Assembly (NCBI GenBank): GCA_002269645.1
Contig: NIVC01001967.1
Location: 153,418 to 217,417 of the forward strand
Length of the DNA: 64,000 nucleotides
Reading direction: 5' to 3'
DNA from: Macrostomum lignano
Taxonomy: Eukaryota
Positions within the stretch are counted from its first letter, which is position 1, and the number at the start of each line of letters is the position of its first letter. The notes under the pieces were generated by a model. The model had not been told where the DNA came from. It saw only the letters and a program-made list of their open reading frames with translations, and searched no databases. A program made the translations under genes and the position numbers. Shown one piece after another: positions 19,602-64,000 of this stretch.

Positions 19602-19660
19602 GAGAGATAGCCTAGAGGCAAACAGACTGACCTGCTAATGCAGCGACGTGGGTTCGAATT
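19602..19660 (+). promoter_or_regulatory. tRNA-Ser(GCT)-derived cassette with Pol III A/B boxes (H1)
   Basis: TAGCCTAGAGG (A box), CTGCTAA (anticodon loop) and GTGGGTTCGAAT (B box), followed by T-runs. Confidence 0.7.
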
Positions 19661-19794
19661 TTTAAATTGTAGAAGTTTTTTATTAAAAAAATTAATTTTA
19701 AACTTTTTAGCTAAAGAAAACTAAAAAACGTCAGGTAAATCAGGTAGAAGAGAAGCTACGAGTATTCATGTAGTATATTCAAATTTTTTTATTA

Positions 19795-22085
19795 AACTGA
19801 GATGCCAAGGCTAAGAGGGAATTTCTGAGATATCAAGACGTGAGGGGAATTGCTGAGATTTCAAGACTTACTGGGGGAATTACTGAGATATAAGGGCTTA
19901 CTGAGATAATTACTGAGATGCCAAGGCTTAAGAGTGAATTGCTGAGATGTCAAGGCTTGAAGGGAATTTCTGAGGTGTCAAGGCTTGGTGGGAATTGCTG
20001 AGATGTTAAGTCTTGGGGAAGAATTCTATGGATTGGGGAATCTTTGAACGAGAGATGCTTCTAATGGATATCTCGAGGAGATTAGGGGATTCTTTGGCCA
20101 AAAATTCTATTCATGGGCGGATTATTTGGATGGGAGATTCTTTGGATTCCTTGAATGGGGAATTCTGTTGATGGGGATTATTTGGACGTGGATTTTTTAA
20201 CGGGTTTTTTAGATGAGGGTATTCTTTGGCCAATTATTCTTTTGATGGGAGAATCAATGGATAATGTGGATGGAGATTCTGTGGATGGGGATTATTTGGA
20301 CGTGGATTTTTTGAACGGGTTTTTTTAGATGAGGGTATTCTTTGGCCAATTATTCTTTTGATGGGAGAATCAAGGGATAATGTGGATGGGGATTATTTGG
20401 ACGTGGATTATTTGCATGGAGATTATTTGGAGGGGGATTCTTTAGATAGGAATGGATGGGGATTGATAGGAGGATTCTTTGGATAGGGATAAATAGGGGC
20501 ATTTTTTCGATAGGGATGGATGGGGGATTCTTTGGATATGGATGGGTGGGGGGATTCTTTCGATAGGGATTCTGTGAATGAGGGATTATTTAAATAGGGA
20601 TTCTTTTGAAGGGGATTCTTTGCATGTGAGATGTTATGGATGGGCAATGCATTGGATGGGAAGTTCTTCAGATAGGAGAATTCCTTGAATGGGGAATTCT
20701 TTGGATCCGGGATTCTATTGATAGCTGGGTTCTTTGGATGGGGGATTTTTTTATATGGATGGAGGTCGGGGATTTTTTGGATAGGGATGGATAGGGGGAT
20801 TCTTCGGATCGGGGATTCTATCGATGGGGGTTCTTTGGATGGGGATTCTCTGCATGTAAGATTCTATGGATGGGCAATTCTTCAGATAGGAGAATTCCTT
20901 GAATGGGGAATTCTTTGGATGGGGGATTCTTTGGATGGGGGATTCTTTAGATGGGGGATTCTTTGATGGGGGATTCTTTGGATGGGGGATTCTTTGGATG
21001 GGGGATTCTTTGGATGGGGGATTCTTTGGATGGGGGATTCTTTGGATGGGGGATTCTTTGGATGGGGGATTCTTTAGATGGGGGATTCTTCGGATCGGTG
21101 ATTCTATCGATGGGAGGTTTTTTGGATGGCGGATTCTTTGCATGTGAGATTCTTTGTATCGTGGATTCTATGGGTGGTGTATTCTTTGGATGAGGGATTC
21201 TTTGGATGGGAGATTCAGTTGGGTGAAATTTTATTGCGTGGGAAAACTGTGGCTGGAGTTTGGACGGAAAGCCCCAACGGGAGTTGGAATTGGCTAGCTG
21301 AGGAAATTGCTTCACTAATCTTGCAGGAGGTAATTTCTATCAGGGGATGCTTGCTATCGGAAGGACGCTCGCTCTTGGGGGATGCTTGCTCGGAAGAGAA
21401 TTTTAAGATGTCAAGATTTACAGGGGGAATTATTGAGATACATGTATAAAATCTTACCTTGGGGAATTAATGACATGTGAAGGCTTAAGAGGGACTTGCT
21501 GAGATGCCAAGGCTTAAGAGGGAATTGCTGAGGTGTCAAGTCTTGTTGGGGAATTGCTGAGATGCCAAGGCTTAAGAGGGAGTTCCTGAGATTTCAAGAC
21601 TTGGGAAGGAGAATTACTCAGATGTCAAGGCTTAGGGGAATTTCTGAGATGTCAAGGCTTGTGGGGGGAATCGCTGAGATGTGAAGGCTTAAGAGGGAAT
21701 CGCTGAGATGTCAAGGCTTGTGGGGGAATTGCTGAGGTTTGAAGGCTTAAAAAGGAATTGCTGAGGTCTTAAGTCTCGGGGAGGGGAATCGCTAAGATGC
21801 CAAGGCTTTGGACGGGGAGAAATTGCTAAGATGTCAAGACTTACTGGAGGAATTACTGAGATATGAAGGCTAACTGGGAGAATTACTGAGATATGAAGGC
21901 TTACTAGGAGAATTACTGAGATATCAAGGCTTGGGGAGGGGAATTACTGAGATGTCAAGGCTTTTGGCGGGGAGAAATTGGTAACATGTCAAGGCTTGCG
22001 CCGGAATTGCTTAGATGTCAATGCTTGGGGAAAATTTCTGAGGTGTCGAGGCTTGGGGGAATTGCTGAGATGTTAAGTCTTGGGG
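19795..22085 (+). repeat. 30-bp minisatellite GGGGAATTGCTGAGATGTCAAGGCTTACTG, two blocks (~19795-20035 and ~21410-22085)
   Basis: Degenerate tandem units read directly from the sequence. The 16-bp array lies between the two blocks. Confidence 0.85.
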
Positions 22086-22885
22086 GAATTCTATGGATTG
22101 ATGATTCTTTGGATGAGGGATGCTTCTAATGGATAAATTTGGATAGGTGATTCATTGGGCAATTTCTTCGGTGGGGCATTGTTTTGGTGGAGGGCTTTTT
22201 GAATGGGGGATTCTTTAGATGAATGATTCTTTAGATGGGGGTTATTTGAACGGGGGTTCTTTAGATGAGGGGATTCTGGGATTATTTGGCCAATTATTCT
22301 TTTGATGTGGGATTATTTCAGGATGTGAATTCTTTGGAGGGGGATTTTTTGGAGGAGGAATTTTTTGGATATGGATGGTTGAGGGGATTATTTAGATAGA
22401 AATGGATGGGGAAATTCTTTGGATATGGATGAATAGGAGGATTCTTGGGATAGGGACCGATGGGGTATTCTTTAGATAGGGATGGATGGGCGATTCTTTG
22501 GATAGGGATGGGTGGGGGGATTCTTTGGATAGAGGGTTTCTGTGTATGGGGGATTTCTTGAATAAGGGATTCATTGGACGAGGAATTCTTCAGATGGGAG
22601 GATTCCTTGAATTGGGAATTCTTCGGATCGGGGATTCTATCAATGGGATGGGATGGGGATGGGACGGGAAGGATTGGTATTCTTTGCATGTGAGATTCTA
22701 TGGATGGGCGATTAATTAAATAGGGAATTCTACAGATAGAGGATTCCTTGAATGGGAAATTCTTCGGATCGGGGATTCTGTCGATGGGGGGTTCCTTGTA
22801 TGGGGATTCTTTGGATGAGGGTTTTTTGCATGTGAGATTATTTGCATCAGGGATTTTATGGATGAGAGATTCTTTGGATGGAAGG
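20040..22885 (+). repeat. 16-bp minisatellite GGGGATTCTTTGGATG, two blocks (~20040-21210 and ~22090-22885)
   Basis: Near-perfect units at 20900-21080. The 16-aa periodicity of the overlapping ORFs equals three units. Confidence 0.9.
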
Positions 22886-23540
22886 TTCAGTTGGGTAAAT
22901 TTCTTTTGCGTGAGAAAACTTTGGTAGGAGTTCTGACGGAAAGCCCCAACGGGGGTTGGAATTGGCTAGTCCAATATACTAAAAATGGTCTGTCTGTGTC
23001 AAAAAAATGAAAATCTTGTATGTTTGTACGAAATCGATTATCTCCCAAAAGGCTCAACCGATTTTCTTCGAACTTGCACTGTTCGATCAGAAATTTTCCC
23101 GTGACGGTACATGTGTCTTGGCTAAGAAATTGCTCAATGCTAAAAGGATTAAATATTCGAAAAACATGCTTTTGTGCAAAGGTCAAGCAAACTTTTCGAC
23201 TTGAAATGCATTGTAAGAATGCTAGAGAAAAAATTGACTGGTTGAATTCTGATTCTGAAATAGATTGCATCACACCAGGCTTTTTATTTATTCACTCTGT
23301 GTACTGGCTTAATTTTGACACTGAATTGAATTGCGTCACAGTATTGAAAACGCAGTGTGGAAGCCTAGCACAATACTTGATTTATATTGCATAACCATAT
23401 TGCTAACTTTAATAGAAACTGGTACTGACTTGCCTAAGAAATTGATTATGTCATAACTGCTTCGTGTGACTTATACTCAATTGACTTGGTGTGAGTGTTG
23501 AATTATATAGGTGCTACAAATTCATTTATAATTTCAATAA

Positions 23541-23601
23541 GAGCTAGCCTAGATGTGAACACACTGGACTGCTAATGCAGCAACCTGGGTTCGAATCTTA
23601 G
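23541..23601 (+). promoter_or_regulatory. tRNA-Ser(GCT)-derived cassette with Pol III A/B boxes (H2)
   Basis: A box TAGCCTAGATG, anticodon arm CTGGA-CTGCTAA-TGCAG (4/5 pairs), T arm CTGGG-TTCGAAT-CTTAG, and a T7 run about 27 nt downstream. Confidence 0.75.
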
Positions 23602-23679
23602 TAGTGTATGAAAAAAAGTAGCATAATTTTTTTCATTGAAAGCTTTTATTAAAGGACTAATTAAAAAGACCTGGATTAT

Positions 23680-24628
23680 GGCGCTAGATAAACCAAGGAT
23701 TACTGCGCTTGATAAACCAAGGATTATTGCACTTGATAAGCCAAGGATTATTGCACTTGATAAGCCAAGGATTATTGCACCTGATAAGCCAAGGACTATT
23801 GCACTTGATAAACCAAGGATTATTGTACTTGATAAGCCAAGGATTATTGCACTTGATAAACCAAGGACTATTGCACTTGATAAACCAAGGATTATTGTAC
23901 TTGATAAGCCAAGGATTATTGCACTTGATAAACCAAGGACTATTGCACTTGATAAACCAAGGATTATTGTACTTGATAAGCCAAGGATTATTGCACTCGA
24001 TTAGCCAATGATTATTGCACTTTTAAGCCAAGGATTATTGCACCTGATAAGCCAAGGATTATTGCACTTGATAAACAAAGGATTAAAAAGACCTGGATTA
24101 TGGCGCTAGATAAACCAAGGATTATTGCACTTGATAAACCAAGGATTATTGCACCTGATAAGCCAAGGACTATTGCACTTGATAAACCAAGAATTATTGT
24201 ACTTGATAAGCCAAGGATTATTGCACTTGATTAGCCAATGATTATTGCACTTTTAAGCCAAGGATTATTGCACCTGATAAGCCAAGGATTATTGCACTTG
24301 ATAAACAAAGGATTAAAAAGACCTGGATTATGGCGCTAGATAAACCAAGGATTATTGCACTTGATAAACCAAGAATTATTGCACTTGATAAGCCAAGGAT
24401 TACTGTGCTTGATAAACCAAGAATTATTGCACTTGATAAACCAAGGATTACTGCGCTTGATAAACAAAGGATTATTGCACTTCATAAACCAAGGATTACT
24501 GCGCTTGATAAACAAAGGATTATTGCACTTGATAAGCCAAGGATTATTTCACTTGATAAGCCAAGGATTATTGCACTTGATAAACCAAGGATTATTGCAC
24601 TTGATAAGCCAAGGATTATTGCACTTGA
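23680..24628 (+). repeat. 24-bp minisatellite ATTATTGCACTTGATAAGCCAAGG (H2, first part)
   Basis: Tandem units that translate as IIALDKPR. The array continues at 37136-37620 and again at 38865-39422. Confidence 0.95.
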
Positions 24629-27166
24629 CTAGCAATCTAGTGCGGCCCCCCTTCGGGGCGCCCAATAAGCAAGGAGCAAAAATAGTTCATGGAAAAAAAT
24701 AAAAAAGCACATTTTCTTAAACACCAATTCCTTCTTCACTTTAAAAAATCACCTTATTAATGTCAAATTGTCATGGACAATGATATTTGCTATGAATCTC
24801 TTTTTCTAAAATTAACAAACAGACAACAGAATATAGCTTTCACAAAGATAACAGACATTCCACCTAAATAGAAAATATTCCCAAGACAGCAAGCATCCCT
24901 CCAGATAGCAAGCACCCTCCTCCAAAAGTAAGCAACCGCAGATAGCAAGCATCTCCCAAATATTGTAGAAGCATCCATCCAGATAGCAAGCATCCACCCA
25001 GGTAGCAAGAATCCACCCAGATAGCAAGCATCCACCCAGATAGCAAGCATCCACCCAATAGCAAGAATCCACCCAGATAGCAAGCATCCTGCACAATGCA
25101 CATAGCAAGTATATCCCAGATATTGTAGAAGTATCCACCCAGATAGCAAGCATCCTGCACATAGCAAGCACCCCCCAGATATTGTAGAAGCATCCACCCA
25201 GATAGCAAGCATCCCTGGATAGAAAGAATCCCATACATGTAGCCAAGCTTATCAAGTGCAGTAATCCTTGGTTTATCAAGTGCAGTAATCCTTGGTTTAT
25301 CAAGTGCAGTAATCTTTGGTTTATCAAGTGCAGTAATCCTTGGTTTATCAAGTGCAGTAATCCTTGGTTTGCCAAGTGCAATAATCCTTGGCTTATCAAG
25401 TGCCGTAATCCTTGGCTTATCAAGTGCAGTAATCCTTGGCTTATCAAGTGCAGTAATCCTTAGCTTATTAAGAGCAATAATTCTTGGCTTATCAAGTGCA
25501 GTAATTCTTGGCTTATCAAGCGCAGTAATCCTTGGTTTTTTAAGAGCAATAATCCTTGGCTTATTAAGAACAATAATCTTTGGTTTATCAAGTGCAATAA
25601 TCCTTGGCCTATTAAGAGCAATAATCCTTGGTTTATCGAGTGCAGTAATCCTTAACTTATTAAGAGCAATAATCCTTGGTTTATCAAGCGGAGTAATCCT
25701 TGGTTTGCCAAGTGCAATAATCCTTGGCTTATTAAGAGCAATAATACTTGGCTTATTAAGAGCAATAATCCTTGGTTTATCAAGTGCAGTAATCCTTGGT
25801 TTGCCAAGTGCAATAATCCTTAGCTTATTAAGAGCAATAATTCTTGGTTTATCAAGAGCAGTAATCCTTGGTTTATTAAGAGCAATAATCCTTGGCTTTT
25901 TAAGAGCAATAATCCTTGGCTTATCAAGCCCAGTAATCCTTGGTTTATTAAGAGCAATAATCCTTGGTTTATCAAGCGCAGTAATCCTTAGCTTATTAAG
26001 AGCAAAAATTCTTGGCTTATCAAGTGCAGTAATCCTAGGCTTATCAAGCGCAGTAATCCTTGGTTTATCAAGTGCAGTAATCCTTGGTTTATCGAGTGCA
26101 GTAATCCTTGGTTTGCCAAGTGCTATATTCCTTGGCCTATTAAGCGCAATAGTCCTTGGTTTATCAAGCGCAGTAATCCTTGGCTTATCAAGTGCAATAA
26201 TCCTTGGCCTATCAAGTGCAATAATCCTTGGTTTATCAAGTGCAGTAATCCTTGGCTTATCCAGTGCAATAATCCTTGGTTTATCAAGTGCAATTATCCT
26301 TGGTTTATCAAGTGCAATAATTTTTAGTTTATCACACATGTGCAGTAATCTCTGGCTTAATAAGTGCAATAATTCTTGGTTTATCAAGCGCAGTAATCAT
26401 TGTTTTATCAAGTGCAATAATTTTTGGTTTATCAAGTGCAGTAATCCTTGGTTTATCTAGCACCATAATCCAGGTCTTTTTAATTATTTTTTTAATAAAA
26501 GCTTTCAATAAAAAAATTATGCTACTTTTATTCTTTTATACACTACTACATGTACATGTATAAGATTCGAACCCAGGTTGCTGCATTAGCAGTCCAGTGT
26601 GTTTACATCTAGGCTAGCTCTCATTGAAATTTTATATGAATTTGTAGCACTTATAATTCAACACTCACACCAAGTCAATTGAGTAAAAGTTACACAAAGC
26701 AGTTATGACACAATCAATTTTTTAGGCAAGTCATACCAGTCTAAAAAAGTTAGCAATATGGTTACGCAATATAAATCAAGTATTGTGCTATGCTTCCACA
26801 CTGCGTTTTCAATACTGTGACGTAATTCAGTGTCAAAATTCAGCCAGTACATAGACGATAAATAAAGCCTATTGTTATGATGCAATCTATTTCAGAATCA
26901 GAATTCAACCAGTCAGTTTTTTTTCTCTAGCATTCTTACAATGCATTTCAAGTCAAAAGAGCTGCTTGACCTTTGCAAAAAAGCATGTTTTTCGAATATT
27001 TAATCCCTTTAGCATCAAGCAATTTCTTAGCCACGATGCATGTACCGTCACGGAAAAATTTCTGATTGAACAGTGCAAGTTCGAACAAAATCGGTTGAGC
27101 CGTTTTTGCTAAAATCGATCACACACACACACACATATACCGACAGACCATTTTTAGTATATTGGA
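24629..27166 (-). mobile_element. non-autonomous Helitron H3, complete copy of the H2 family
   Basis: Minus strand starts TCCAATATAC at 27166, then core, tRNA-like cassette, 24-bp array (25248-26465), 18-bp array (24885-25215), CCCC-GAAG-GGGG hairpin and CTAG at 24629-24632. Confidence 0.88.
26561..26621 (-). promoter_or_regulatory. tRNA-Ser(GCT)-derived cassette (H3)
   Basis: Reverse complement reads GAGCTAGCCTAGATGTAAACACACTGGACTGCTAATGCAGCAACCTGGGTTCGAATCTTA. Confidence 0.75.
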
Positions 27167-30100
27167 CTAGCCATTTAGCCCCCCGCTGGGGAGCCTTGAA
27201 AATGACACCAATTGGTTTTTATTTTGGCACAAGAGTAACCTTACTATAATCATCCAAAATTTTGATTTCCAATAATCAAAAATTACCTTTTCTCATTTTG
27301 GCAGAAATAAATTGTCATTAATCCGAATTTTATTAGCCAAAAAAGTTTCGTTCATCAGCTCAAAACCCTTTCTAAATCAGCAAATAGTGCTTATCCTTTC
27401 AAGCACAAACTCTTGATGCATATCGTCACTGGCCGGGGCATATTCTGATCCGCAGCAGGAGCTCAATATGCAAATCCCTGACGCCCTTAGACCCTCTCTC
27501 TATATTAGCCTAAATCAAAGGATCAAACCAGCGCAAAGGATTAAATGCGCTGGTATTTCCTATTAGCAGAAATCAGCATCACTTGTGTACTTTTTCATTA
27601 TCTGAATTACATGAGCTACTTGAGCCGTACTACCTGACTATCTGACAATCGCCCAACAACCTAACACCCCTCAAAAAAATTCAGCCATCGTCCATGAGCC
27701 TTGACATCTCAGTAATTTCCACAGTAAGCCTTGATGTCTGAGGAATTCCCCCAGGAAGCCTTGACATCTCAGCAATTCCCCCAGTAAGCCTTGACATCTC
27801 AGCATTCCCCCAGTAAGCATTGAGATCTCAGCAATTCCGCCAGTAAGCCTTGGCATCTCAGCAATTCCCCCAGTAAGCCTTGACATCTCAGCAATTCCCC
27901 CAGTAAGCCTTGACACCTCAGCAATTCCCCCAGTAAGCCTTGAGATCTCAGCAATTCCCTCAGTAAGCCTTGACATCTCAGCAATTCGCCCAGTAAGCTC
28001 TGAGATCTCAGTAAGCATAGAAATCTTAGCAATTCCCAGTAGGACTTGACATTTTAGCAATTCCCAGAAAGCCTTGACACCTCAGCAATTCCTAGTAGGA
28101 CTTGACATCTCAGCAATTCCCCCATTAAGCCTTGACATTGCAGCAATTCTCCCAGCGCAGTAATTAGCCTTGACATCCCAACAACCCAACTCCCCTCTCC
28201 CAAGAATTCAGCAATCCCCTTATAAGCCTTGATAACTCAGCTATTCCCCCATGAGCTTTGATATCTTAGCAAGTCTTTAATTGATTGTTGACAGCGGTGA
28301 TTCTATGATTGAACCAAAACTGACCCTAAGCCCCCAAACCTACCCATAAGTGAGTCTTGGCATGTTAGCAATTTCCACTATGAGCCTTGAGCCTCAGCAT
28401 TAAAGTAACTTCCTCATAAGTTTTGTAATCTGAATTTCACCGAAAGCCTTGACCTATCAGCAATTCCCCGTAGAGCCAAAGCATTTAAGTAATTCGCCCC
28501 AAGAGCCTTTAATCTTAGCAATTCCTCGATGGATCATTGATGGTTGTCACGACGATCGCTCTATAATTTAACCAAAACCATAACCCTTAACCTTTAGTCG
28601 AATTTCAGCAATTCCCCAATGAGCTTTGGAAATGTTAGCAATTTTCCCATGAGCCTGAAAATTGAGTGACTAACCATTTGAAATCTTGGCACTTGCATTT
28701 CAACAATTAATTTCAGCAATTTCACAAATGAAACTTGAAATCAAAGCAATTCTCCCCAGAATGACATAATTATAGCAATTCTCCTTTGTCTTGATATCTT
28801 ATAAATTCTTCCATGAGTATTGATATATCACAGCAATTTACCATACGAGCATTATGCTCGTAGCAATGGTCTTAGCAGTCTTAACAGTCAGCAATTCCCG
28901 ATGAGACTTTTGCTTTCGACAGGGCGCTTTTTTATGATTGACATGATGATTCTTGTTCGTTTTTTCTTGCCTTTGCGTTTTCTTCTCTTTAAAAGAAGTT
29001 TATATTAAAAAATACAATATTTCACTATAGCTTTCTGCAGTTTAGCAATGGTTCACCAGCAGTTTAGCAATGCAGTTTAGCAATGCTTCACCAGCAGTTT
29101 AGCAATGGTTCACCAGCACTGTTTTGCACAATCAGTGAGCAGATGGCCACTAATCTTTGCATATGGCCATATTGCTTCTGCATAATCGAAACCATTTAAA
29201 ATGTTTTTGCAACTTGCAGGGTAAATTTAATCTCCTTACATATTTATTATTTTATTATATGCGTCGACAGATTAGCACTGCTCTCCCCGATTAGCGCTGC
29301 TCACCCAGATTAGCAATACCCTTTGTAAATTAGCACTTACAGCAGATGAGCACTGCTCTTGAAGCTTAGCGTAGCCCCAGCGAAAGTATATATAAAATAA
29401 AATGTTAAAAATTTGCATGAATTCCCATAGGAAACAATGATTATTGTCACAAAGATAAATTCGCTGCTTTAATGTAGACTCGAACTGCCGACCTTCTACT
29501 AAAAACGTTACTATTCTAGAAGTTTAGTAACTTCGCACTTTGAAGTTAACCCCCCCCCCACCCAGAAATCGGCAGTTATCCCCACAACATCCTGAAATTA
29601 GCTATCACTTCTAATCCCACAAACAGACTGCAGTCATACTCTTAGCAGCCTGCAGATATCCACTGTGCCGTCTACAACTTTCATTAACATCAGCAAACTA
29701 CAATACTTCACTCAGCAGTCCGCAGTTATCCACTCAACAACTTGCACTTAATTCTTCACAGCTATTATCCACTTTAAACTCTGTAGATAGTTATCCCCTC
29801 AACAGTTTGCTGCTATGCACTCATAAGTGTTGAGGAACTACCTCAGCAGTTTGTTCCATTTTTCCCTTTGCAGTCTGCATGAATGATCCCTTTGACAATC
29901 TGCAGTTCCACTCAGCATCTTCTGTTCTCCTTTTCAATAATCTTGCAATCTTCCAATAATCTAAAAATGTGCTCAGCATTTTACGGCTCACTAAACATTT
30001 TTAAGTACATATCGGCATTCTTAAAAAGCTCAAAATTTAGCAATTTTAAGAAATTTAAGAAATTTTAACAGCATGGTCTGCAGTTTAATAGCAATTTCAT

Positions 30101-31283
30101 ACAATTTCATACTTTCATGGTGCGAGGCAGTACTCGTTGATGGGATCAGTAATACACGAAGCAGTTTTTTAAAATCAAATTTGATAAGTGGCTTGTGCCA
30201 AGTAGCAAAAATTATTTGCTAATTAATAAAAATTGTTGCAATTAAAATTAATAAAAAATATGTTATATTTAGTCGAGTCACAAGCTACAAATGAATGAAT
30301 TTACTTATTTTAATTATCCACCGGGAGGCGGACTCGAACCTTGGACCTTACGCCTAGCCTAAACCTAGTCCTAGTGCCTACACTGCGGCTATTCCGCCTA
30401 CTGATGGAAGGGCGCAAAAATCAGACATATATGCTTCGGCACTGCAGTCAAATACATACCAGTGATAGCCTGCATGCTCAGTGTGCACAGTTTTGGTGCT
30501 GGCAGAGCCATTGCACAGTTAAGTAAATCTCTCAATTTCAATACTTTTAAAATGCACTGGCTGATTTCTCTCTCCCTCCAGAGTGCCTGCGCAATGCTTG
30601 GCACACTGCCTCCTGCTGAAAAGCTCAGAGTCAGTTTATAGCGAGAATATGCAGTACGCAGTTGTGGCGCAATCATTTAGAATTGTAATTCAGCCAGTCA
30701 AGAATTCAACCCTGCTTGGCCTTCCATTAAAAGCATTTAGATAAACTTGTTTTTCGAATATTTAATACCTTTAGCATTGAAGCAGATTAAAGAAATTTTA
30801 GCTGTCCTCTTTCCAGATAATTACAAAACTTTTGGCCAAAACGCGATCAAAATTGGTCAAGAATTGCAGTCTGTAGAGCGTTACGAAAAACAGATCTTTG
30901 ACGCTTAAAAAGCTCGCTGCTAGCCTCCAGAATAATTTTATTTTTGACCCCTGGTATGGTTGCGCAATTTAAATAGAGTAATTATCTGGGCAGTGGGGCC
31001 CATTGAGTTTTCTGATCAGTTCGCTCTGGCGCAATCAATTAAAATTGGCAGTGAAGCTTCTCGCTGATAAAATTTGCATTGAAAAAGGCCATTTAAAACA
31101 GTTTTTCGAATATTTAATCCCTTTAGCATTGGAGCAGATTAAAGAAATTTTAACCGTCTTCTTTCCAGACAATTTTGAATCTTTTGGCGAAAACGCGATC
31201 AAAATCGGTGAAGAATTGCAGTCTCTAGAGCGTTATGGACATTCAAGCATACAAACCTTAGAGATTTAGTATATTTAGATAGA
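27167..31283 (-). mobile_element. non-autonomous Helitron H4 (30-bp array, second tRNA-like cassette)
   Basis: Minus strand starts TCTATCTAAATATACTAAATCTC and ends with a CCCC-AGCG-GGGG hairpin and CTAG at 27167-27170. The 30-bp array is at ~27690-28150. Confidence 0.85.
30319..30398 (-). promoter_or_regulatory. tRNA-like A/B-box cassette, type 2 (H4)
   Basis: Reverse complement GGCGGAATAGCCGCAGTGTAGG...GGTCCAAGGTTCGAGTCCGCC has an A-box-like TAGCCGCAGTG and a perfect B box GGTTCGAGTCC. Confidence 0.6.
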
Positions 31284-48374: not shown

Positions 48375-48407
<33 letters not shown>

Positions 48408-52050: not shown

Positions 52051-52110
52051 TTTTGTGTTTAGCATTTTGTGTTTTTAAGGTTTTTGAATAAAAAAATCTT
52101 TTTGCACAGC

Positions 52111-52170
52111 TAAGATTCGAACCCAGGTCGCTGCATTAGCAGTCCAGTCTGTTCGCATCTATGCTATCTC
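52111..52170 (-). promoter_or_regulatory. tRNA-Ser(GCT)-derived cassette (H7)
   Basis: Reverse complement reads GAGATAGCATAGATGCGAACAGACTGGACTGCTAATGCAGCGACCTGGGTTCGAATCTTA, with a T7 run about 14 nt downstream. Confidence 0.75.
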
Positions 52171-52653
52171 TTGTCAATTGGAGTACATGAATTGTGGCCC
52201 TTATAATTAAATTCTTATAGCAAATCGGTTAGAGTAAAAAGTTATGACATAATCAATTTCTCAGTCAGCCAGTATCAGTCTCAATTCAAGTTAGCAATAT
52301 GGTTACGCAATTACAATCAAGTCTTGTGTGCATTTCTTCGGCACTGTTTTGAACTTGTTGTGATGCAATCATTACCACAATCAGAATTCAGCCAGTCAGT
52401 TTTTTCTCTAGCATTCTTAAAATGCATTTTAAGTCGAAAATTTTGCTTGACCTTTGCAAAAAAGCATGTTTTTCGAATATTTAATCCCTTTAGCATTTAG
52501 CAATTTCTTAGCCAAGATGCATGTACTGTGCCAGGAAAATTTCTGAATGAATGGTGCAAGTTTGAAGAAAATCGGTTGAGCCAATTTTTCTGAAATCTAT
52601 CGCATACCTACCCACATACATACATACAGACAACTCATTTTTAGTATATAGGA

Positions 52654-55600: not shown

Positions 55601-56715
55601 TGGTGGCTGTTTTTTGTTCTACATGGTAACTCTTTTATGTTTGATACGGTGGCTTTTTAATGTCTGACATGGTGGCTCTTCTATGTTTAACATGGTGGCT
55701 CTTCTATGTTTGACACGGTGGCTCTTTAATTTTCGACAAAGTGGCTATTTGATGTTCGAAATGGTGGCTCTTTAAAGTTTGACATAAAGTCACATATATG
55801 TTTGACATGGTGGCTCTTAAATGTTTGACATGGTGGCTCTTAAATGTTTGACATGGGGGCTCTTAAATGTTTGACATGGTGGCTCTTAAATGTTTGACAT
55901 GGTGGCTCTTAAATGTTAGACGTGGTGGCTTGTTTAGGTTTGACATAGTGGCTCTTCTATGTTTGAAATGGTGGCTTTTTAATCGTTGACATGGAGTCAC
56001 GTATATGTTTGACATAGTGCTTATTTTATGTTTTACATGGTAACTCTTTTATATTCGAAATGTTGGCTCTATAATGTTCGACATGGTGGCTCTTCGTTGT
56101 TTGACATTGCGCTTCTATTATGTTTAGCAGTTTTGTTGTGTTTTTAAGGTGTTTTGATAAAAAAAATCTTTTTGCACTACTAAGATTCGAACCCAGGTCG
56201 CTACATTAGCATTCCAGTCTGTTCGCATCTTGGCTATATCTTTCCAATTGGAGAACGTGAATTGTGGCCCTTATAATTCAATTCTTACAGCAAGTCAATT
56301 GAAGTAAAAAGTTATGACATAATCAATTTCTCAGTCAGCCAGTATCAGTCTCAATTTGAGTTAGTAATATTGGTTACGCAATTTAAATCAAGTCGTGTGT
56401 GCATTTCTTCGGCACTGTTTTCAACTTGTTGTGATGTAATCTTTATCACAATCGGAATTCAGCCAGTCAGTTTTTTCTCTAGCATTCTTACAATGAATTT
56501 TAGGTCGAAAGAGCTGCTTGACCTTTGCAAAAAGCAGGTTTTTCGAATATTTAATCCCTTTAACATTGAGCAATTTCTTAGCCAAGATGCATGTACCGTC
56601 CCAGGAAAATTTCTGATCAAATGGTGCAGGTTTGAAGAAAATCGGTTGAGCCATTTTTTCTGAAATCTATCGCATACCTACCCACATACAGACAACTCAT
56701 TTTTAGTATATAGGA
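52654..56715 (-). mobile_element. non-autonomous Helitron H8, H7 family
   Basis: Same architecture as H7: TC start at 56715, tRNA-like cassette 56181-56240, 23-bp array 53010-56110, 18-bp array 52800-52925, CTAG at 52654-52657. Confidence 0.88.
56181..56240 (-). promoter_or_regulatory. tRNA-Ser(GCT)-derived cassette (H8)
   Basis: Homolog of 52111-52170 with B box GGTTCGAATC intact. Confidence 0.7.
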
Positions 56716-56859
56716 CTAGCAATCTTCGCCCCCCGTTGGGGGACATCTGTATAGAATCTCTGTTCTCTACAAGTAACAAAAAGATAGCCAAAAAAGCCTT
56801 CACAAAGAAAACAGACAAAATACTCAAAGGAAGTGCAATGCAGAAAGAAATCATCCCAA

Positions 56860-57790
56860 GACAGCAAGCATCCCCCAGATAGCAAGCATCCTCTAGATTG
56901 CAAGCAACCCTTGGATAGCAAGCATCCCCCAGATAGCAAGCATCCCCCAGATAGCAAGCATCCCCTAGATAGCAACCATCCCCCAGATAGCAAGCATCCT
57001 CCAGATAGCAAGCATCCCCCAGATAGCAAGCATCCCCCAGACAGCAAGCATCCCCCAGATAGCAAGCATCCCCCAGATAGCAAGCATCCCCCAGATAGCA
57101 AGCATCCTCTAGATTGCAAGCAACCCTTGGATAGCAAGCATCCCCCAGATAGCAAGCATCCCCCAGATAGCAAGCATCCCCTAGATAGCAACCATCCCCC
57201 AGATAGCAAGCATCCTCCAGATAGCAAGCATCCCCCAGATAGCAAGCATCCCCCAGACAGCAAGCATCCCCCAGACAGCAAGCATCCCCCAGATAGCAAG
57301 CATCCCCCAGATAGCAAGCATCCCCTAGATAGCAACCATCCCCCAGATAGCAAGCATCCTCCAGATAGCAAGCATCCCCCAGATAGCAAGCATCCCCCAG
57401 ACAGCAAGCATCCCCCAGATAGCAAGCATCCCCCAGATAGCAAGCATCCCCCAGATAGCAAGCATCCTCCAGATAGCAAGCATCCCCCAGATAGCAAGCA
57501 TCCCCCAGATAGCAAGCATCCCCCAGATAGCAAGCATCCCCCAGATAGCAAGCATCCCCAAGATAGCAAGCATCCCCCACATAGCAAGCATCCCTCAGAT
57601 AGCAAGCATCCCCCAGATAGCAAGCATCCCCCAGATAGCAAGCATCCCCCAGATAGCAGGCATCCCTCAGATAGCAAGCATCCCCCAGATAGCAAGCATC
57701 CCCCAGATAGCAAGCATCCCCCAGATAGCAAGCATCCCCCAGATAGCAAGCATCCACCAGATAGATGGCATCCCCAAATAGCAAGCATCC
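56860..57790. repeat. 18-bp minisatellite GATAGCAAGCATCCCCCA (~50 units)
   Basis: Near-perfect units that translate as DSKHPP, with a 216-bp higher-order repeat. Confidence 0.95.
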
Positions 57791-59039
57791 ACCAGACAAT
57801 AGGTAGCTAGTGCGACAATTTCCTAAGCATTATAGTGGCTCCTTTAAAATTCGCTTACTTTTACGTTTGAAATTGTGTAAATTTTATGTTTGACATGGTG
57901 GCTCTTTTATGTTCTACATGGCAACTCTTTTATGTTTGAAACAATGGCTTTTTAATGTCTGACATGGTGGCTCTTTAATGTTTTTCATGGTGGCTGTTTT
58001 ATGTTTGACATGGTGGCTCTTTATTGTTTGACATTGTGGCTCTTTAATGTTTGACACAGTGGCTCTTTAATGTTCGACAAAGTGGCTATTTAATGTTTGA
58101 CAAGGTGGCTTTTAAATGTTTGACATGGTGGCTCTTTAATGTTTGACATAAAGACACATATATAATTGACATGGTGGCTCTTAAATGTTTGACATGGTGG
58201 CTCTTTAATGTTTGACATGGTGGCTCTGTAATGTTCTAAATGGTGGCTCTTTAATGTTTGACATGGTAGCTCTTTTATGTTCGACATGGTGGCTCTTTTT
58301 GGTTTGACATGGTGGCTCTTTTAGGTTTGACATGGTGGCTCTTAAATGTTCGACATGGTGGCTCTTAAATATTTGACATGGTGGCTCTTTTAGGTTTGAC
58401 ATGGTGGCTCTTAAATGTTCGACATGGTGGCTCTTAAATATTTGACATAGTGGCTCTTAAATATTTGACATGGTGGCAATAGACAATAGAAAAACTGCTC
58501 AAATGAAGCGCAATGCAAAAAGAAAACATCCCAAGACAGCAAACATCCCCCCTCCTCCCAGATAGCAAGCATCCCCAGATAGCAAGCACCCCCAGATAGC
58601 AAGCACCCCCAGATAGCAAGCACCCCCAGATAGTAAGCACCCCCAGATAGCAAGCACCCCCAGATAGCAAGCACCCCAGATAGCAAGCACCCCCAGATAG
58701 CAAGCACCCCCAGATAGCAAGCACCCCCAGATAGCAAGCACCCCCAGATAGCAAGCACCCCCAGATAGCAAGCACCCCCAGATAGCAAGCACCCCCAGAT
58801 AGCAAGCACCCCCAGATAGCAAGCACCCCCAGATAGCAAGCATCCCTCAGATAGCAAGCACCCCAGATAGAAAGAACCCCCAGATAGCAAGCGTCCAATT
58901 GATAGCAAGTATCTATCCTTAAATAGCAAGCATCCACCAGACAAAAAGTATATAGTGCAACATTTCCTTTTAGCTTTCTAGGGGCTCCTTTATGATTGGC
59001 ATGACGCTTCTTATTACGTTTGAAAATGTCTCTCCTGTG

Positions 59040-62000
59040 CTTGAAATGGTGGCTATTTTATGTTTGAATTGGTGGCTTTTTAATGTTTGGCATGGTGACT
59101 CTTTAATGTTCTACATGGTGGCTCTTTAATGTTTGACATCGTGCCAGTTTTATGTTTGTCATGGTGGCTCCTTAATGCTAGAAACGGTGGCTCTTTATTG
59201 TTTGACATAGAGTCACATATATGTTTCACATGGTGGCTCTTCTATGTCTAACTTGGTAGCTCTTTTATGTTTGACATCGTGGCTCGTTAATGTTCGACAT
59301 GGTGGCTCTTTAACGTTCGACATGGTGGCTCTTTAATGTTCGACATGGTGGCTCTTTACTGTTCGACATGGTGGCTCTTTATTGTTTGACATGATGGCTC
59401 TTTAATGTTTGACATTGTGGCTCTTTAATGTTCTACATATTGTGGCTCTTTAATGTTCGACATGGTGGCTCTTTAATGTTCTACATTGTGGCTCTTTATT
59501 GTTTGAAACGATGGCTTTTTATTGTTTGACATCATGGCTCTTTAATGTTCTACATTGTGGCTCTTTAATGTTCTATAATGTTTGACATGGAGTCATGTAT
59601 GTTTTTGGCATGGAGTCACGTATATGCTTTACATGGTGACTCTTTAATGTTCTACATTGTGGCTCTTTAATGTTCTATAATGTTTGACATGGAGTCATGT
59701 ATGTTTTTGGCATGGAGTCACGTATATGCTTTACATGGTGACTCTTTAATGTTCGACATGGTGGCTCTTTAATGTTTGACATGGAGTCACGTATATGTTT
59801 GACATGTAGTCACGTATATGTTTGACATGGTGGCTCTTTAATGTTTGACATAGTGGCTCTTTTATGCTTGAAATGGTGGCTCTTTAATGTTCAACATGGT
59901 GGTTCTTTAATGTGTGACATGGTGGCTCTTTAATGTTTGACATGGAGTCATGTATGTTTTTGGCATGGAGTCACGTATATGCTTCACATGGTGACTGTTT
60001 AATGTTCGACATGGTGGCTCTTTAATGTTTGACATGGAGTCACGTATATGTTTGACATGTAGTCACGTATATGTTTGACATGGTGGCTCTTTAATGTTTG
60101 ACATAGTGGCTATTTTATGCTTGAAATGGTGGCTCTTTAATTTTCGACATGGTGCTCTTTTATGTTTAACATGTTGCTCTTAAATGTTCGACATCGTGGC
60201 TCTTTAATGTTTGACATGGTGGCTCTTTAATGTTTCACATGGAGTCACGTATGTGTTTGACATGGAGTCACGTATATGCTTTACATGGTGGCTCTTTTAT
60301 GTTTGACATAGTGGCTCTTTATTGTTTGACATGGTGGCTCTTTTATGTTCGACATGATGGCTCCTTAATGTTCGACATGGTGGCTGTTTAATGTTTGTTA
60401 TGTAGTCATATGTATATGTTTTACATGGTGGCTCTTTAATGTTAGACAGGGAGTCACGTATATGTTTGACATGTAGTCACGTATATGTTTGACATGGTGG
60501 CTCTTTAATGATCTACATGGTGGCTCTTTAATGTTTGACATGGTGGCTCTTTAATGTTCGACATGGTGGCTCTTTAATGTTTGACATGGTGGCTCTTTAA
60601 TGCTTGACATGGTTGCTCTTTAATGTTCGACATGGAGTCACGAATATACTTGACATGGTGACTCGTTAATGTTTGACATGGTGGCTCTTTAATGTTTGAC
60701 CTGGTGGCACCTTAATGTAATGATGGCTCTTTAATGTTTGAAATGGTGGCTCTTTAATATTTGACATGGTGGCTCTTTAATGTTAGACATGGTGGCTCTT
60801 TAATCTTCGACATGGTGGCTCTTTAATTTTTGAAATGGTGGTCCTTTAATGCATGACATGGTGCCTCTTTAATGTTTGACGTGTTGGCTCTTTTATGTTT
60901 GACATGAAGGCTCTTTAATGTTCTACATGGTGGCTTTTTTATTTTCGACATGGTGGCTCTTATATGTTTGGCATGATGGCTCTTTGATGTTTGACATGGA
61001 GTCACGAATATACTTGACATGGTGACTGGTTAATGTTAGACATGGTGGCTCTTTAATGTTTGACCTGGTGGCACCTTAATGTCTGTAATGATGGCTTTTT
61101 AATGTTTGAAATGGTGGCTCTTTTATGTTTGACATGGTGGCTCTTTTATGTTCGACATGGTGGCTCTTTGATGTTCGACATGGTGGCTCTTTAATGTTCA
61201 ACATGGTGGCTCTTTTAATGTTCGACATGGTGGCTCTTTAATGTTTGACATGGTGGCTCTTTAATGTTAGACATGGTGGCTCTTTAATGTTTGACATGAA
61301 GTCACATATATGTTGGACATGGTGGCTCTTTAATGTTTGACATGGTGGCTCTTTAATGTTCGACATGGTGGCTCTTTAATGTTAGACATGGTGGCTCTTT
61401 AATATTCGACATGGTGGCTCTTTAATGTTAGACATGGTTGCTCTTTAATGTTCGACATGATGGCTCTTTAATGTTTGACATGGTGGCTCTTTAATGTTTG
61501 ACATGGTGGCTCTTTAATGTTCGACATGATGGCTCTTTAATGTTTGAAATGGTGGCTCTTTAATGTTAGACATGGTGGCTCCTTAATGTTAGACATGGTG
61601 GCTCTTTAATGTTAGACATGGTGACTCTTTAATGTTAGACATGGTGGCTCTTTAATGTTTGACATGAAGTCACATATATGTTGGACATGGTGGCTCTTTA
61701 ATGTTAGACATGGTGGCTCTTTAATGTTCGACATGGTGGCTCTTTAATGTTAGACATGGTGGCTCTTTAATATTCGACATGGTGGCTCTTTAATGTTAGA
61801 CATGGTGGCTCTTTAATGTTCGACATGATGGCTCTTTAATGTTTGACATGGTGGCTCTTTAATGTTTGACACAAAGTCACATATATGTTTGACATGGTGG
61901 CTCTTAAATGTTTGACATGGTGGCTCTTTATGTTTGACATGTTGGCTGTTTTATGTTTGACATGTTGGCTCTTTTATGTTTGACATGATGGCTCTTTTAG

Positions 62001-63890
62001 GTTTGACATGGTGGCTCTTTTATGCTTGATATGGTGGCTCTTTAATGTTTAGCATGGTGACTTTTAATGTTTGACATGGTGGCTCTTTTATGTTTGACAT
62101 GGTGGCTCTTTAATGTTCGCCATGGTGGCTCTTTAATGTTCGCCATGGTGGCTCTTTAGTGTTTGACATGGTGGCTCTTTAATGTTCGACATGGTGGCTC
62201 TTTAATGTTTGACATAGTGGCACTTTTATGTTTGACATGGTGGCTTTTTAATGTTCGCCATGTGGCTCTTTAAAGTTTGACATGGCGGCACTTTATGTTT
62301 TTGTTGACATGGAGTCACGTATACGTTTGACATAGTGTCTCTTCAATGTTTGACATGGTGGCTATTTTGTGTTCGACATGATAGCTCTTTAATGTTTGAC
62401 ATGGTAGCTCTTTACATGTTCGACATGGTAGCTTTTTAATGTTTGACATGTTGGCTCTTTTATGTTTTGACATGATGGCTCTTTTAGGTTTGACATGGTT
62501 GCCTCTTTTATGCTTGATATGGTGGCTCTTTAATGTTTAGCATGGTGACTTTTAATGTTTGACATGGTGGCTCTTTAATGTTCGCCATGGTGCTCTTTAA
62601 TGTTCGCCATGGTGGCTCTTTAATGTTTGACATGGTGGTCTTTAATGTTTGACATGGTAGCTCTTTAATGTTCGACATTGGTAGCTTTTAATGTTTGACA
62701 TGGTGGCTCTTTATGTTCGACATGGTAGCTTTTTAATGTTTGACATGGTGGCTCTTTTATGTTTGACATGGTGGCTCTTTACTGTGTGAAATAGTGGCTC
62801 TTTAATGTTCTACACGCGTAACTTTTTATGTTTGATACGGTGGCTTTTTAATGTCTGACATGGTGGCTCTTTAATGTTTAACCTGGCTGGCTCTTTTATT
62901 GTTTGACACGGCGGCTCTCTAGTGTTTGACAAAGTGGCTATTTAATGTTCGAAATGGTGGCTCTTTTAAAGTTTGACATAAAGTCACATATATGTTTGAG
63001 ATGGTGGCTCTTAAATGTTTGACATGGTGGCTCTTAAATGTTTGACATGGTGGCTCTTTAATGTTCTTCATGGTGGCTCTTTAATATTCTACATGGTGGC
63101 TCTTTTATGTTTGACATGGTGGCTTTTTAATGTTTGACATGGTGGCTCTTTTATGTTCGACATGGTGGCTCTTTACTGTTTGAAATGGTGGCTCTTTAAT
63201 GTTCTACATGGTAACTCTTTTATTTTTGATACGGTGGCTTTTTAATGTCTGACATGTGCGCTCTTTTATGTTTGACATTGTGGCTCTTTAATGTTCTTCA
63301 TGGTGGCTCTTTAATGTTCTTCATGGTGGCTCTTTAATATTCTACATGTTGGCTCTTTATGTTTTGACATGGTGGCTGTTTTTTGTTCTACATGGTAACT
63401 CTTTTATGTTTGATACGGTGGCCTTTTTAATGTCTGACATGGTGGCTCTTCTATGTTTAACATGGTGGCTCTTCTATGTTTGACACGGGTGGCCTCTTTA
63501 ATTTTCGACAAAGTGCTATTTGATGTTCGAAATGGTGGCTCTTTAAAGTTTGACATAAAGTCACATATATGTTTGACATGGTGGCTCTTAAATGTTTGAC
63601 ATGGTGGCTCTTAAATGTTTGACATGGGGGCTCTTTAATGTTTGACATGGTGGCTCTTAAATGTTTGACATGGTGGCTCTTAAATGTTAGACGTGGGTGG
63701 CTTGTTTAGGTTTGACATAGTGGCTCTTCTATGTTTGAAATGGTGGCTTTTTAATCGTTGACATGGAGTCACGTATATGTTTGACATAGTGCTTATTTTT
63801 ATGTTTTACATGGTAACTCTTTTATATTCGAAATGTTGGCTCTATAATGTTCGACATGGTGGCTCTTCGTTGTTTGACATTGCGCTTCTA
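59040..63890. repeat. 23-bp minisatellite GACATGGTGGCTCTTTAATGTTT (H9)
   Basis: Tandem array that copies parts of the H7 and H8 arrays. Confidence 0.95.
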
Positions 63891-64000
63891 TTATGTTTAG
63901 CAGTTTTGTTGTGTTTTTAAGTGTTTTGATAAAAAAAATCTTTTTGCACTACTAAGATTCGAACCAGGTCGCTACATTAGCATTCCAGTCTGTTCGCATC

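Follow-up and report, generated by a model that had tools for sequence, protein, structure and literature searches.

A tRNA-related cassette with RNA polymerase III-type boxes in the leaders of canonical Helitrons of Macrostomum lignano

Seven canonical Helitrons (H1, H2, H3, H6, H7, H8, and H9) in a stretch of Macrostomum lignano DNA carry an alignable tRNA-like segment of ~60 bp, which is placed after the 5' leader and before the first minisatellite and is directed in element sense in all seven. The earlier note on this DNA had described such a segment in the same elements and in the same place, and this observation is confirmed, whereas its interpretation is partly supported. We put at about 50% the probability that the segment, termed the type-1 cassette, is a tRNA-derived unit, most like tRNA-Ser(GCT), that was captured once, has been inherited as a block in the Helitron leader, and is under constraint as a DNA motif for TFIIIC and RNA polymerase III (Pol III). 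The stretch analyzed, termed the window, comprises 64,000 nucleotides, and the features within it are collected in Table 1.

Table 1. Positions of the Helitrons, the type-1 cassettes, and the other tRNA-like units in the window
Feature	Positions	Strand	Details
H1 and H1b	18702-22969	+	H1 18702-21297 (CTAG end); 5'-less partial H1b 21298-22969 (CTAG end)
H2	22970-40151	+	Two pieces, 22970-24628 and 37136-40151, split by the H5-H4-H3 composite
H5-H4-H3 composite	24629-37135	-	Three Helitrons, one insertion between A and T: H5 37135-31284, H4 31283-27167, H3 27166-24629
H9-H8-H7-H6 chain	45494-64000	-	Head to tail, exact CTAG/TC junctions: H9 (>64000 to 56716), H8 56715-52654, H7 52653-48437, H6 48436-45494
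H1 type-1 cassette	19608-19681	+	A box 19608-19618, loop 19632-19638, B box 19651-19661, T5 19659-19663, T6 19676-19681
H2 type-1 cassette	23504-23633	+	TATA-like 23504-23510, A box 23545-23555, loop 23569-23575, B box 23588-23598, T7 23627-23633; Rfam tRNA 13.0 bits
H3 type-1 cassette	26510-26616	-	A box 26616-26606, loop 26592-26586, B box 26573-26563, 14-bp insertion, T7 26516-26510
H6 type-1 cassette	47844-47918	-	A box 47918-47908, loop with 1-nt insertion, B box 47874-47864, T4 47866-47863, T7 47850-47844; Rfam tRNA, no match
H7 type-1 cassette	52090-52205	-	Most tRNA-like copy; TATA-like 52205-52199, A box 52166-52156, loop 52142-52136, B box 52123-52113, T7 52096-52090; Rfam tRNA 17.4 bits
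H8 type-1 cassette	56159-56275	-	TATA-like 56275-56269, A box 56236-56226, loop 56212-56206, B box 56193-56183, T8 56166-56159; Rfam tRNA, no match
H9 type-1 cassette	63931-64000	-	Cut by window/contig end; loop 63983-63977, B box 63965-63955, T8 63938-63931; A box outside window
H4 type-2 unit	30318-30401	-	GGCGGAATAGCCGCAGTGTAGGC...GGTTCGAGTCC
H5 type-2 unit	35800-35886	-	Local identity maximum H4 versus H5; Rfam tRNA, no match
H5 type-3 unit	34795-34893	-	AATAGCCGCAGTAGGCAGGC...AGTTCGAGCCT

Results

Host elements

Canonical Helitrons begin with TC, end in CTRR, and have a GC-rich hairpin typically 10-20 nt before the 3' end; they insert at A/T without a target-site duplication and, unlike Helentrons/Helitron2, have no terminal inverted repeats. 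All eight 5' ends in the cluster start with TC (TCC(T/A)ATATACTAAA, TCTATCTAAATATAC, or TCTTTCTAAATATAC), all nine 3' ends are CTAG, and the hairpin CCCC(C)NNNGGGG(GG), its stem ending ~15 nt from the 3' terminus, is present in nine of nine. The H5-H4-H3 composite lies in ...CACTTGA/TAAGCC..., and when position 24628 is joined to 37136 a 24-mer unit is restored perfectly and no base is duplicated, as for insertion at A/T. Of the three free 3' flanks, two start with T and one (H1a) with C, and the only free 5' flank, that of H1, has T rather than A as its last base. Comparison of the reverse complement of the 5' end with the last 150 nt gives similarity at shuffle level in the four elements compared, and the Helentron class is ruled out because terminal inverted repeats are absent and the target is A/T. 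These features support the host elements as real canonical Helitrons that have transposed. The H1-H9 lineage is non-autonomous within the window, where no RepHel gene is found among the long ORFs; an autonomous partner that encodes RepHel and has matching ends is expected for a non-autonomous Helitron.

Anatomy of the cassette

The motif GGTTCGAATC at up to one mismatch occurs nine times compared with 2.4 expected, none of the shuffles reaching nine, and seven of the nine matches (19651+, 23588+, 26564-, 47865-, 52114-, 56184-, and 63956-) fall within the alignable ~60-bp segment. Scored against a consensus of TRGCNNAGTGG for the A box and GGTTCGANNCC for the B box, with a required spacing of 30-60 nt, the cassettes agree at 7-8 of 9 fixed positions in each box. 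The A-box-like motif has the general form TAGCNNAGA(T/G)G and varies by copy, being TAGCCTAGAGG only in H1 and H6, TAGCCTAGATG in H2 and H3, TAGCATAGATG in H7, and TAGCCAAGATG in H8. The B box is GGTTCGAAT(C/T)T, with the core GGTTCGAAT identical in all seven copies, and starts 43-44 nt from the start of the A box. The earlier note had placed an A box, a CT-GCT-AA loop, a B box, and a T run in each copy; the B-box core and a run of T6-T8 hold throughout, but the A box of H9 lies past the window end and the loop, CTGCTAA elsewhere, is ATGCTAA in H8 and H9. The T run is found 13-46 nt 3' of the B box and keeps a constant place although the flanks diverge, which counts for a Pol III reading, whereas a T4-T5 run that additionally overlaps the end of the B box in H1 and H6 counts against it. 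The sequence TATAAG is located ~40 nt 5' of the A box.

The first array follows 53-136 bp after the end of the B box. Its repeat unit is a 28-mer in H1 and a 24-mer in both H2 and H3, whereas H6 has a 23-mer and H7-H9 have a different 23-mer, all of these units being devoid of tRNA likeness. The window has 11 B-box-like sites, each of them within a Helitron, and the 74 kb made up of the window and 10 kb upstream contain no decayed or box-less cassette and no cassette outside a Helitron.

Relatedness to tRNA

The tRNA finders to which the earlier note had pointed call no tRNA at normal thresholds. ARAGORN finds 0 tRNA genes in the window at default settings, and when relaxed calls only the H7 copy, at an 80% threshold at which 3% of shuffles are also called; Rfam applied to the whole window detects no tRNA, whether the cutoff is the gathering score or an E of 10. 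With isolated copies the Rfam tRNA model matches two of five, H7 and H2, weakly (scores in Table 1; threshold 29 bits), and is among the top-ranking matches for both, whereas H8, H1, and H6 have no match in the 161-nt search and neither does the type-2 unit described below. The 17.4-bit match of H7 has an E of 0.24 over 4227 families in 161 nt, corresponding by our own scaling to ~6e-5 for the tRNA family alone. The top alignment of the cassette is with tRNA-Ser(GCT), scoring 44 compared with at most 33 in 300 shuffles, against a hand-entered human reference rather than one from M. lignano, and covers tRNA positions ~3-62 with a gap at the variable arm. The likeness to tRNA-Ser(GCT) without variable arm and acceptor stem, as the earlier note had described it, is reproduced in its outline, but with that reference the specific origin is a lead only. 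The anticodon arm is kept (4/5 bp) and some copies have a G-U-rich T arm, whereas the stems of the acceptor, D, and T arms have not been preserved and no cloverleaf is seen by the finders. Taken together, the alignments support a cassette that is tRNA-related; it is not a tRNA gene.

The cassette was also considered as a structured RNA and as a ribozyme or retrozyme, and both were rejected. Minimum free energy folds of eight predicted transcripts are at shuffle level with a best z-score of -1.76, and no hammerhead or other ribozyme family is matched up to E 10 in the whole window (Rfam). An inverted repeat formed by the A and B boxes is present in H7 and H8 and absent from H1 and H6.

H4 and H5, a sister family which the earlier note had omitted, have different tRNA-like units in the same orientation (types 2 and 3 in Table 1). 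Identity between H4 and H5 is 0.92-0.97 in the type-2 unit compared with 0.79-0.86 around it, and these paralogous units keep the acceptor 5' strand and the D arm. The H4 counterpart of the type-3 unit, at 29470-29530, has lost its 5' half, so such tRNA-like units can decay.

Conservation within the leader

The cassette has an identity of 0.79-0.91 between lineages compared with 0.53-0.76 for the upstream spacer and 0.48-0.64 downstream (Fisher p of 0.02 to 1e-4 between lineages), the lineages that are independent numbering ~4 and all coming from one 45-kb cluster that grew partly by duplication. Within the cassette, 2 of 19 box positions are variable compared with 15 of 39 other positions (p = 0.026), and both N positions of the A box vary. 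The better conservation of the segment (79-91% against 48-76% for the flanks) and of its boxes, which the earlier note had proposed as a check, is therefore found, in copies that are few and partly dependent: some are segmental duplicates, and cassette identities of 98.9% for H8/H9 and 98% for H2/H3 mark these pairs as near-duplicates. The flanks may also have been replaced rather than decayed, which would inflate the contrast.

The cassette is one of several conserved islands, which follow a fixed order of 5' end, 30-bp motif, block A, block B, and cassette. A leader of ~620 bp is common to H2/H3 and H6-H9 at 83-92% identity, and H1 has the last ~250 bp only; in H1 the similarity of block A is wholly lost and the cassette is the best-conserved piece. 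Block A is conserved at 0.83-0.92 and the 30-bp motif is found with at most two mismatches in 10 copies, both without tRNA likeness. Block A has no match in Pfam, and its reading as a captured coding fragment was rejected on this result. As block A and the 30-bp motif match or surpass the cassette in their conservation, this feature is not specific to the Pol III boxes; moreover, the entire cassette is conserved and not the boxes alone, which counts against a Pol III reading. The islands may mark something else, for example sites of recognition by RepHel, an autonomous parent's promoter, or blocks of recombination.

These results bear on two statements of the earlier note. The cassette had been called a fixed module of several families that persists across different arrays, and the arrays do differ, but the common 5' leader means that the families are subfamilies with different arrays. 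Retention had been preferred to chance capture, and the conserved island agrees with this, but other leader islands are conserved equally or better, and one capture followed by descent, which we infer, would suffice to explain presence.

Searches for further copies

No free SINE with the cassette as its head, such as the earlier note had suggested looking for, is present in the window and the 10 kb upstream. The unit is internal to Helitrons only, rather than a 5' head accompanied by a LINE-related or A-rich tail and target-site duplications, and a SINE with a tandem-repeat body is ruled out because ~575 bp of conserved leader precede the unit and the T run follows it. Exact-pattern scans of viral contigs and of metagenome contigs give 0 matches each, and an ORF that five leaders keep open gives 0 matches as a protein query. 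Exact look-ups of the window ORFs return nothing on record or only the same contig, and the retroelement reverse transcriptase relatives lead to a contig of another organism without such a Helitron. The sequence strings do not occur in the literature searched, and literature searches return no report of a tRNA-like module in Helitrons, in agreement with the earlier note, which did not know of it as a described Helitron standard.

Discussion

In the reading that we prefer, the cassette would descend from a tRNA gene, or from the tRNA-derived head of a SINE, as a relic that lost its variable arm by deletion and joined the 5' leader of a non-autonomous canonical Helitron lineage in M. lignano. 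The block would then have been passed on to the subfamilies while the minisatellite arrays turned over fast. The parts kept would correspond to a type-2 Pol III unit with TATAAG, a near-consensus A box, an invariant B-box core, and a T6-T8 terminator. The pattern of change fits constraint on DNA motifs through TFIIIC/Pol III binding and not on RNA structure, as seen from retained boxes, two variable free positions in the A box, and unpreserved stems. Binding of TFIIIC/Pol III by the boxes probably persists. If active, the unit would produce an RNA of 65-100 nt that starts ~10-15 nt 5' of the A box and ends in the T run before the array.

The cassette may instead be a passenger, a tRNA pseudogene or SINE fragment captured or inserted once and inherited with the leader with no activity or effect; this is a real possibility, although on balance we find it doubtful. 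Captured host fragments are common in Helitrons, and here all copies have one leader in common and several are local duplicates. The conservation would then be only apparent, as the AT-rich neighbors readily undergo indels and recombination and only a small number of related copies is compared, and the identity of 0.48-0.64 in spacer and downstream sequence is indeed near the level of non-homologous AT-rich DNA. The half-deleted type-3 unit of H4, the stems that are not maintained, and RNA folds no better than shuffles also agree with a passenger, whereas a B-box core invariant in seven of seven copies, a T run held in place, and box positions less variable than the rest of the cassette (p = 0.026) do not, nor does H1, where the cassette is the best-conserved piece although block A similarity is gone. 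A similar pattern moreover recurs in the type-2 unit.

A stronger claim than that of the preferred reading is that the cassette is a putative working Pol III/TFIIIC unit, a standard leader part, with paralogues in the sister family, that would act in cis beside the arrays. It might form a chromatin boundary, so that the 5' end stays accessible next to heterochromatin induced by the repeats, or a barrier to replication forks by which array expansion is seeded or polarized, or it might give rise to a small RNA. We regard this as unlikely, and we know of no need of a DNA transposon for a Pol III promoter, which counts against a Pol III reading. More improbable again is that the islands, cassette included, are the leader (promoter/5' UTR) of an autonomous RepHel Helitron, with constraint acting in the parent and the copies arising by repeated internal deletion. 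Motifs that are exactly those of a Pol III unit with its terminator would be odd inside a Pol II leader, and the long ORFs of the window include no RepHel gene, against which can be set the several islands in fixed order and the arrays that start directly after the cassette in every subfamily as if replacing the coding part. Finally, the boxes could be coincidental in a conserved transposon block that is not tRNA-derived. This is very improbable given the exact B-box core, the A-box-like motif at 43-44 nt, and the 7-nt CTNNNAA loop on a 4/5-bp stem, jointly at tRNA spacing; the tRNA-Ser(GCT) alignment above all shuffles (hand-entered human reference), the tRNA model among the top matches in two copies, and the acceptor 5' strand and D arm kept in the H4/H5 paralogues argue in the same direction. 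The points that chance resemblance would explain are the failure of tRNA finders to make a call at normal thresholds, the three of five copies without a tRNA-model match even in the 161-nt search, and the lack of a cloverleaf.

Comparison with known systems

The heads of tRNA-derived SINE2 elements are degenerate tRNA copies with A and B boxes at tRNA spacing, a decaying cloverleaf, and many mobile copies. The cassette is likewise a degenerate tRNA with boxes at tRNA spacing that is multicopy in a mobile element, but it is located ~575 bp inside a rolling-circle DNA transposon rather than at the 5' end of a retroposon and has no LINE-like tail, and a transcript could not span the element because of the T run within 13-46 nt. 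More generally, the small-RNA-gene promoters of retroelements (SINEs, Cassandra, Helenus, and Ajax) make RNA that is copied back into DNA. The non-autonomous TRIMp3 LTR retrotransposons Cassandra (5S), Helenus (tRNA-like), and Ajax (5S) have a fixed Pol III promoter derived from small-RNA genes, with promoter motifs better conserved than their surroundings and SINE insertion thought to be the origin (PMC10886601). The Helitrons resemble them as a non-SINE transposon family with fixed, better-conserved Pol III-type promoter motifs of small-RNA-gene derivation. The role of the TRIMp3 promoter is clear because its RNA is reverse-transcribed, whereas a Helitron moves as DNA and its unit is internal and self-terminating.

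Non-autonomous Helitrons/Helentrons with central tandem repeats are known as DINE-1/DINE-TR1 in Drosophila and Cg_HINE in oyster (PMC7492417, PMC9659126). The present elements are similar in the short conserved 5' part, the subfamily-specific mini-/satellite arrays, the conserved 3' hairpin end, and the clustering, but they are canonical (TC...CTAG, A/T target, no terminal inverted repeats) and not Helentrons. The oyster Cg_HINE paper mentions no tRNA-like unit, and the word "tRNA" is absent from it. Among amphibians, tRNA-related Pol III-type satellites are described as Hydromantes Hy/Pol III and Xenopus satellite 1 (PMC9659126). The tRNA-related region is physically tied to tandem repeats there as here, but it is present in every repeat unit of those satellites and as a single unit upstream of the arrays in the Helitrons.

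As a Helitron moves as DNA, a retained Pol III unit would point to another use than in retroelements, such as TFIIIC-based chromatin bordering, replication interference beside expanding arrays, or small-RNA production, and if selected it would make these elements the first DNA transposon family with such a module. The cassette would then offer a simple sequence handle for testing these ideas in M. lignano, which is culturable and can be made transgenic, and even as a passenger it marks the descent and recombination of the array-bearing Helitron subfamilies.

Helitron Arrangement in the Window

The left 18.7 kb of the window holds ordinary genes and transposon remnants, and the remainder consists of Helitrons except for ~5.3 kb (40152-45493) with a Ty3-type retroelement. 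This element occupies the 5.3 kb separating two converging Helitron chains, with a repeated motif at 40414 and 43987. Window position 64000 is the end of contig NIVC01001967.1 (assembly GCA_002269645.1, 153418-217417), and the assembly break there was probably caused by Helitron arrays. Eight Helitron 5' ends in the window start with TC, and nine 3' ends consist of CCCC(C)NNNGGGG(GG) followed after ~11 nt by CTAG. Terminal inverted repeats are absent in the four elements compared with shuffles, a lack on which Helentron identity was rejected, and the cassette carriers are canonical Helitrons.

The site 24628/37136 is the strongest proof of transposition among these Helitrons. Here a 12.5-kb composite of H5, H4 and H3 splits the 24-mer array of H2 between A and T, and rejoining the flanks at 24628 and 37136 restores a perfect 24-mer unit with no bases duplicated. 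The internal joints of the composite are exact CTAG/TC junctions, and it looks like a single transposed unit in which two internal 3' ends were bypassed. Because it interrupts H2, that element comprises 22970-24628 and 37136-40151. The remaining elements form two chains with exact CTAG/TC junctions, H1/H1b/H2 on the plus strand (H1b being a partial element lacking its 5' part) and H9/H8/H7/H6 on the minus strand. A 98% match between 48604-52052 and 58591-62065, covering ~3.5 kb of arrays, and the 98.9% identity of the H8 and H9 cassette regions (56100-56300; 63900-64000) indicate that the minus chain grew partly by recent segmental duplication and not by new insertions. The contig end falls inside H9, shortly beyond its 4.8-kb 23-mer array.

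Features located in the window (mariner-type annotation from the public record)
Feature	Position	Strand	Remarks
Mariner-type transposase gene	179-802	+	Left of Helitron cluster
Acyl-CoA dehydrogenase ORF, 415 aa	4562-5809		100% identity to Macrostomum lignano protein
Reverse-transcriptase fragment	8178-8783	+	Left of Helitron cluster
Rhodopsin-type GPCR (two ORFs)	11748-14718	+	Left of Helitron cluster
30-bp motif AATGCTAAAGGGATTAAATATTCGAAAAAC	23136, 26987, 30749, 31101, 36230, 36629, 36953, 48239, 52468, 56538		10 copies, ≤2 mismatches
H5-H4-H3 composite	24629-37135	-	Three head-to-tail elements, two families; 5' TC to 3' CTAG
Type-2 unit, GGCGGA(A/G)TAGCCGCAGTGTAGGC...GGTTCGAGTC	30318-30401 (H4), 35800-35886 (H5)	-	
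Type-3 unit	34795-34893 (H5), 29470-29530 (H4)	-	5' half lost in H4
Ty3-type LTR retroelement ORFs (PNMA-like gag, zinc knuckle, RT, RNase H, integrase)	40464-43593	+	

Anatomy and Origin of the Cassette

With ≤1 mismatch, GGTTCGAATC occurs at 9 sites in the window compared with 2.4 expected, and a ~60-bp alignment joins seven of the nine. The tRNA-like segment so defined, the type-1 cassette of H1, H2, H3 and H6-H9, is composed of an A-box-like TAGCNNAGA(T/G)G, a CTGCTAA loop on a 4/5-bp stem, an invariant GGTTCGAAT starting 43-44 nt past the A-box start and a T6-T8 run 13-46 nt beyond GGTTCGAAT. TATAAG is placed 39-41 nt 5' of the A box in all copies but H1. The motif order and sense described in the earlier note hold in seven copies, but its exact A-box string, TAGCCTAGAGG, is confined to H1 and H6, and the A box of H9 lies outside the window, beyond its end. 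All 11 B-box-like sites in the window (RGTTCGARNCY and two AATTT variants) are within Helitrons and in element sense. From the 5' end, each element passes through the leader, the cassette, the T run and the first array to a hairpin tail and CTAG, and in H2/H3 and H6-H9 a (GGTGCTTGCTATCTGGG)n-type array lies between the first array and the tail.

Neither ARAGORN nor Rfam identifies a tRNA gene in the whole window; on this and the missing acceptor and D stems, tRNA gene identity was rejected. Searched as 161-nt segments against the Rfam tRNA model (gathering score 29 bits), H7 scores 17.4 bits and H2 13.0 bits, and H8, H1 and H6 have no match. The H7 match has an E-value of 0.24 across 4227 families, rescaled by us to ~6e-5 for the tRNA family alone and roughly 0.02 for the whole window. 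Relaxed ARAGORN picks out H7 alone, and the setting needed for this also admits 3% of shuffled segments. The T stem, broken in H1 and H6, is otherwise rich in G-U pairs, and predicted cassette transcripts fold no better than shuffles. As a lead, an alignment with thirteen human tRNA sequences places the cassette consensus closest to tRNA-Ser(GCT) (44 compared with ≤33 in 300 shuffles); it covers tRNA positions ~3-62, and its 13-nt gap coincides precisely with the variable arm. This agrees with the resemblance to tRNA-Ser(GCT) suggested in the earlier note. A tRNA derivation of the cassette is assigned a probability of 0.85-0.9, and tRNA-Ser(GCT) itself is the somewhat favored parent.

The leader, the 5' part of the element upstream of the cassette, is alignable over ~620 bp across H2, H3, H6, H7 and H8; H1 has in common only its last ~250 bp (the conserved block B and the cassette) and a short piece of a second conserved stretch, block A. 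With a shared leader and differing arrays, the "several families" said to carry the module are better described as subfamilies of one lineage, all within one Helitron cluster, and a single capture followed by descent would be enough to explain the cassette in every carrier.

tRNA-like Units of H4 and H5

H4 and H5, a sister family, have different 5' ends, arrays and tails and no type-1 cassette. They contain two different tRNA-like segments, the type-2 and type-3 units, both in element sense and 5' of the arrays. The type-2 unit retains the acceptor 5' strand and D arm and forms a local identity peak between H4 and H5 (0.92-0.97 compared with 0.79-0.86). A lead-in CAATA(A/G)G..TAGCC common to all three types suggests they may be old paralogues. 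The shortened type-3 unit of H4 means that retention of such units is not absolute, and a truncated type-1-like leader within H5, ending just before the cassette site, indicates that the elements are mosaic. The 5' regions of H4 (30750-31283) and H5 (36370-37135), on the minus strand, have 2-3 tandem partial leader copies.

Conservation of the Leader

Pairwise identity in a 55-column sliding window is 0.80-0.95 for block A among five elements, followed by a hypervariable gap, then ~0.75 for block B, 0.54-0.62 for the spacer, 0.87-0.88 for the cassette and ~0.5 downstream; with H1 added to the comparison, the cassette ranks first in conservation. Counting substitutions only, between lineages, the values are 0.79-0.91 (cassette), 0.70-0.85 (block B), 0.53-0.76 (spacer) and 0.48-0.64 (downstream), and the cassette differs from its pooled flanks at p=0.02 to 1e-4 (Fisher tests) in six lineage pairs, drawn from about four independent lineages of a single cluster. 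Within the cassette 2 of 19 box sites vary compared with 15 of 39 others (p=0.026, positions classed after the data were seen), and the variable A-box sites of H7 and H8 coincide with the two positions (N) that the consensus leaves free. Three of five positions in the T-stem 5' strand vary with no compensation, which fits a DNA-motif constraint better than an RNA-structure constraint.

Discussion

The favored reading is that a Pol III unit derived from tRNA-Ser(GCT) entered an ancestral Helitron leader once, by capture or as a short retroposed insertion, and was then passed down as a block. Most copies have an A-rich stretch after the tRNA-like part, consistent with the retroposed route. The boxes, their spacing, the upstream TATAAG and the terminator make the cassette a plausible TFIIIC/Pol III site with a predicted 65-100-nt RNA. 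Binding or transcription of some copies is possible, at a little under even odds, and an effect of this on the Helitron or its arrays is unlikely.

The chief rival reading takes the cassette as a neutral passenger. The equal decay of boxes and flanks that the earlier note named as refuting evidence is not seen here. Flank identity is low, near that of unrelated AT-rich DNA, so the flanks may reflect replacement and not slow decay. Block A is kept as well as the cassette, AATGCTAAAGGGATTAAATATTCGAAAAAC, present in every family, is better kept, and the Pol III boxes are not, on these alignments, singled out as the sole constrained part of the leader. Almost all full-length elements (H2-H8) have AATGCTAAAGGGATTAAATATTCGAAAAAC ~165 bp in from the 5' end, with 2-3 copies in each of H4 and H5 and only a diverged piece in H1. 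A third reading assigns such conserved islands to the leader of an autonomous parent Helitron. An antisense frame of 85-128 codons is open across block A (22976-23400 in H2 and equivalents in H3, H6, H7 and H8), and having neither a Pfam match nor relatives in the protein collection it is probably non-coding.

A literature search gives no reported tRNA-like module in a Helitron and no description of Macrostomum lignano Helitrons. Array-bearing non-autonomous Helitrons/Helentrons are already known in DINE-1 and Cg_HINE (PMC7492417, PMC9659126), the oyster Cg_HINE paper never mentioning tRNA, and tRNA-related Pol III satellites are tabulated for amphibians (PMC9659126). Fixed Pol III modules are found in SINEs and in the LTR elements Cassandra, Helenus and Ajax, where the module makes the template RNA (PMC10886601).
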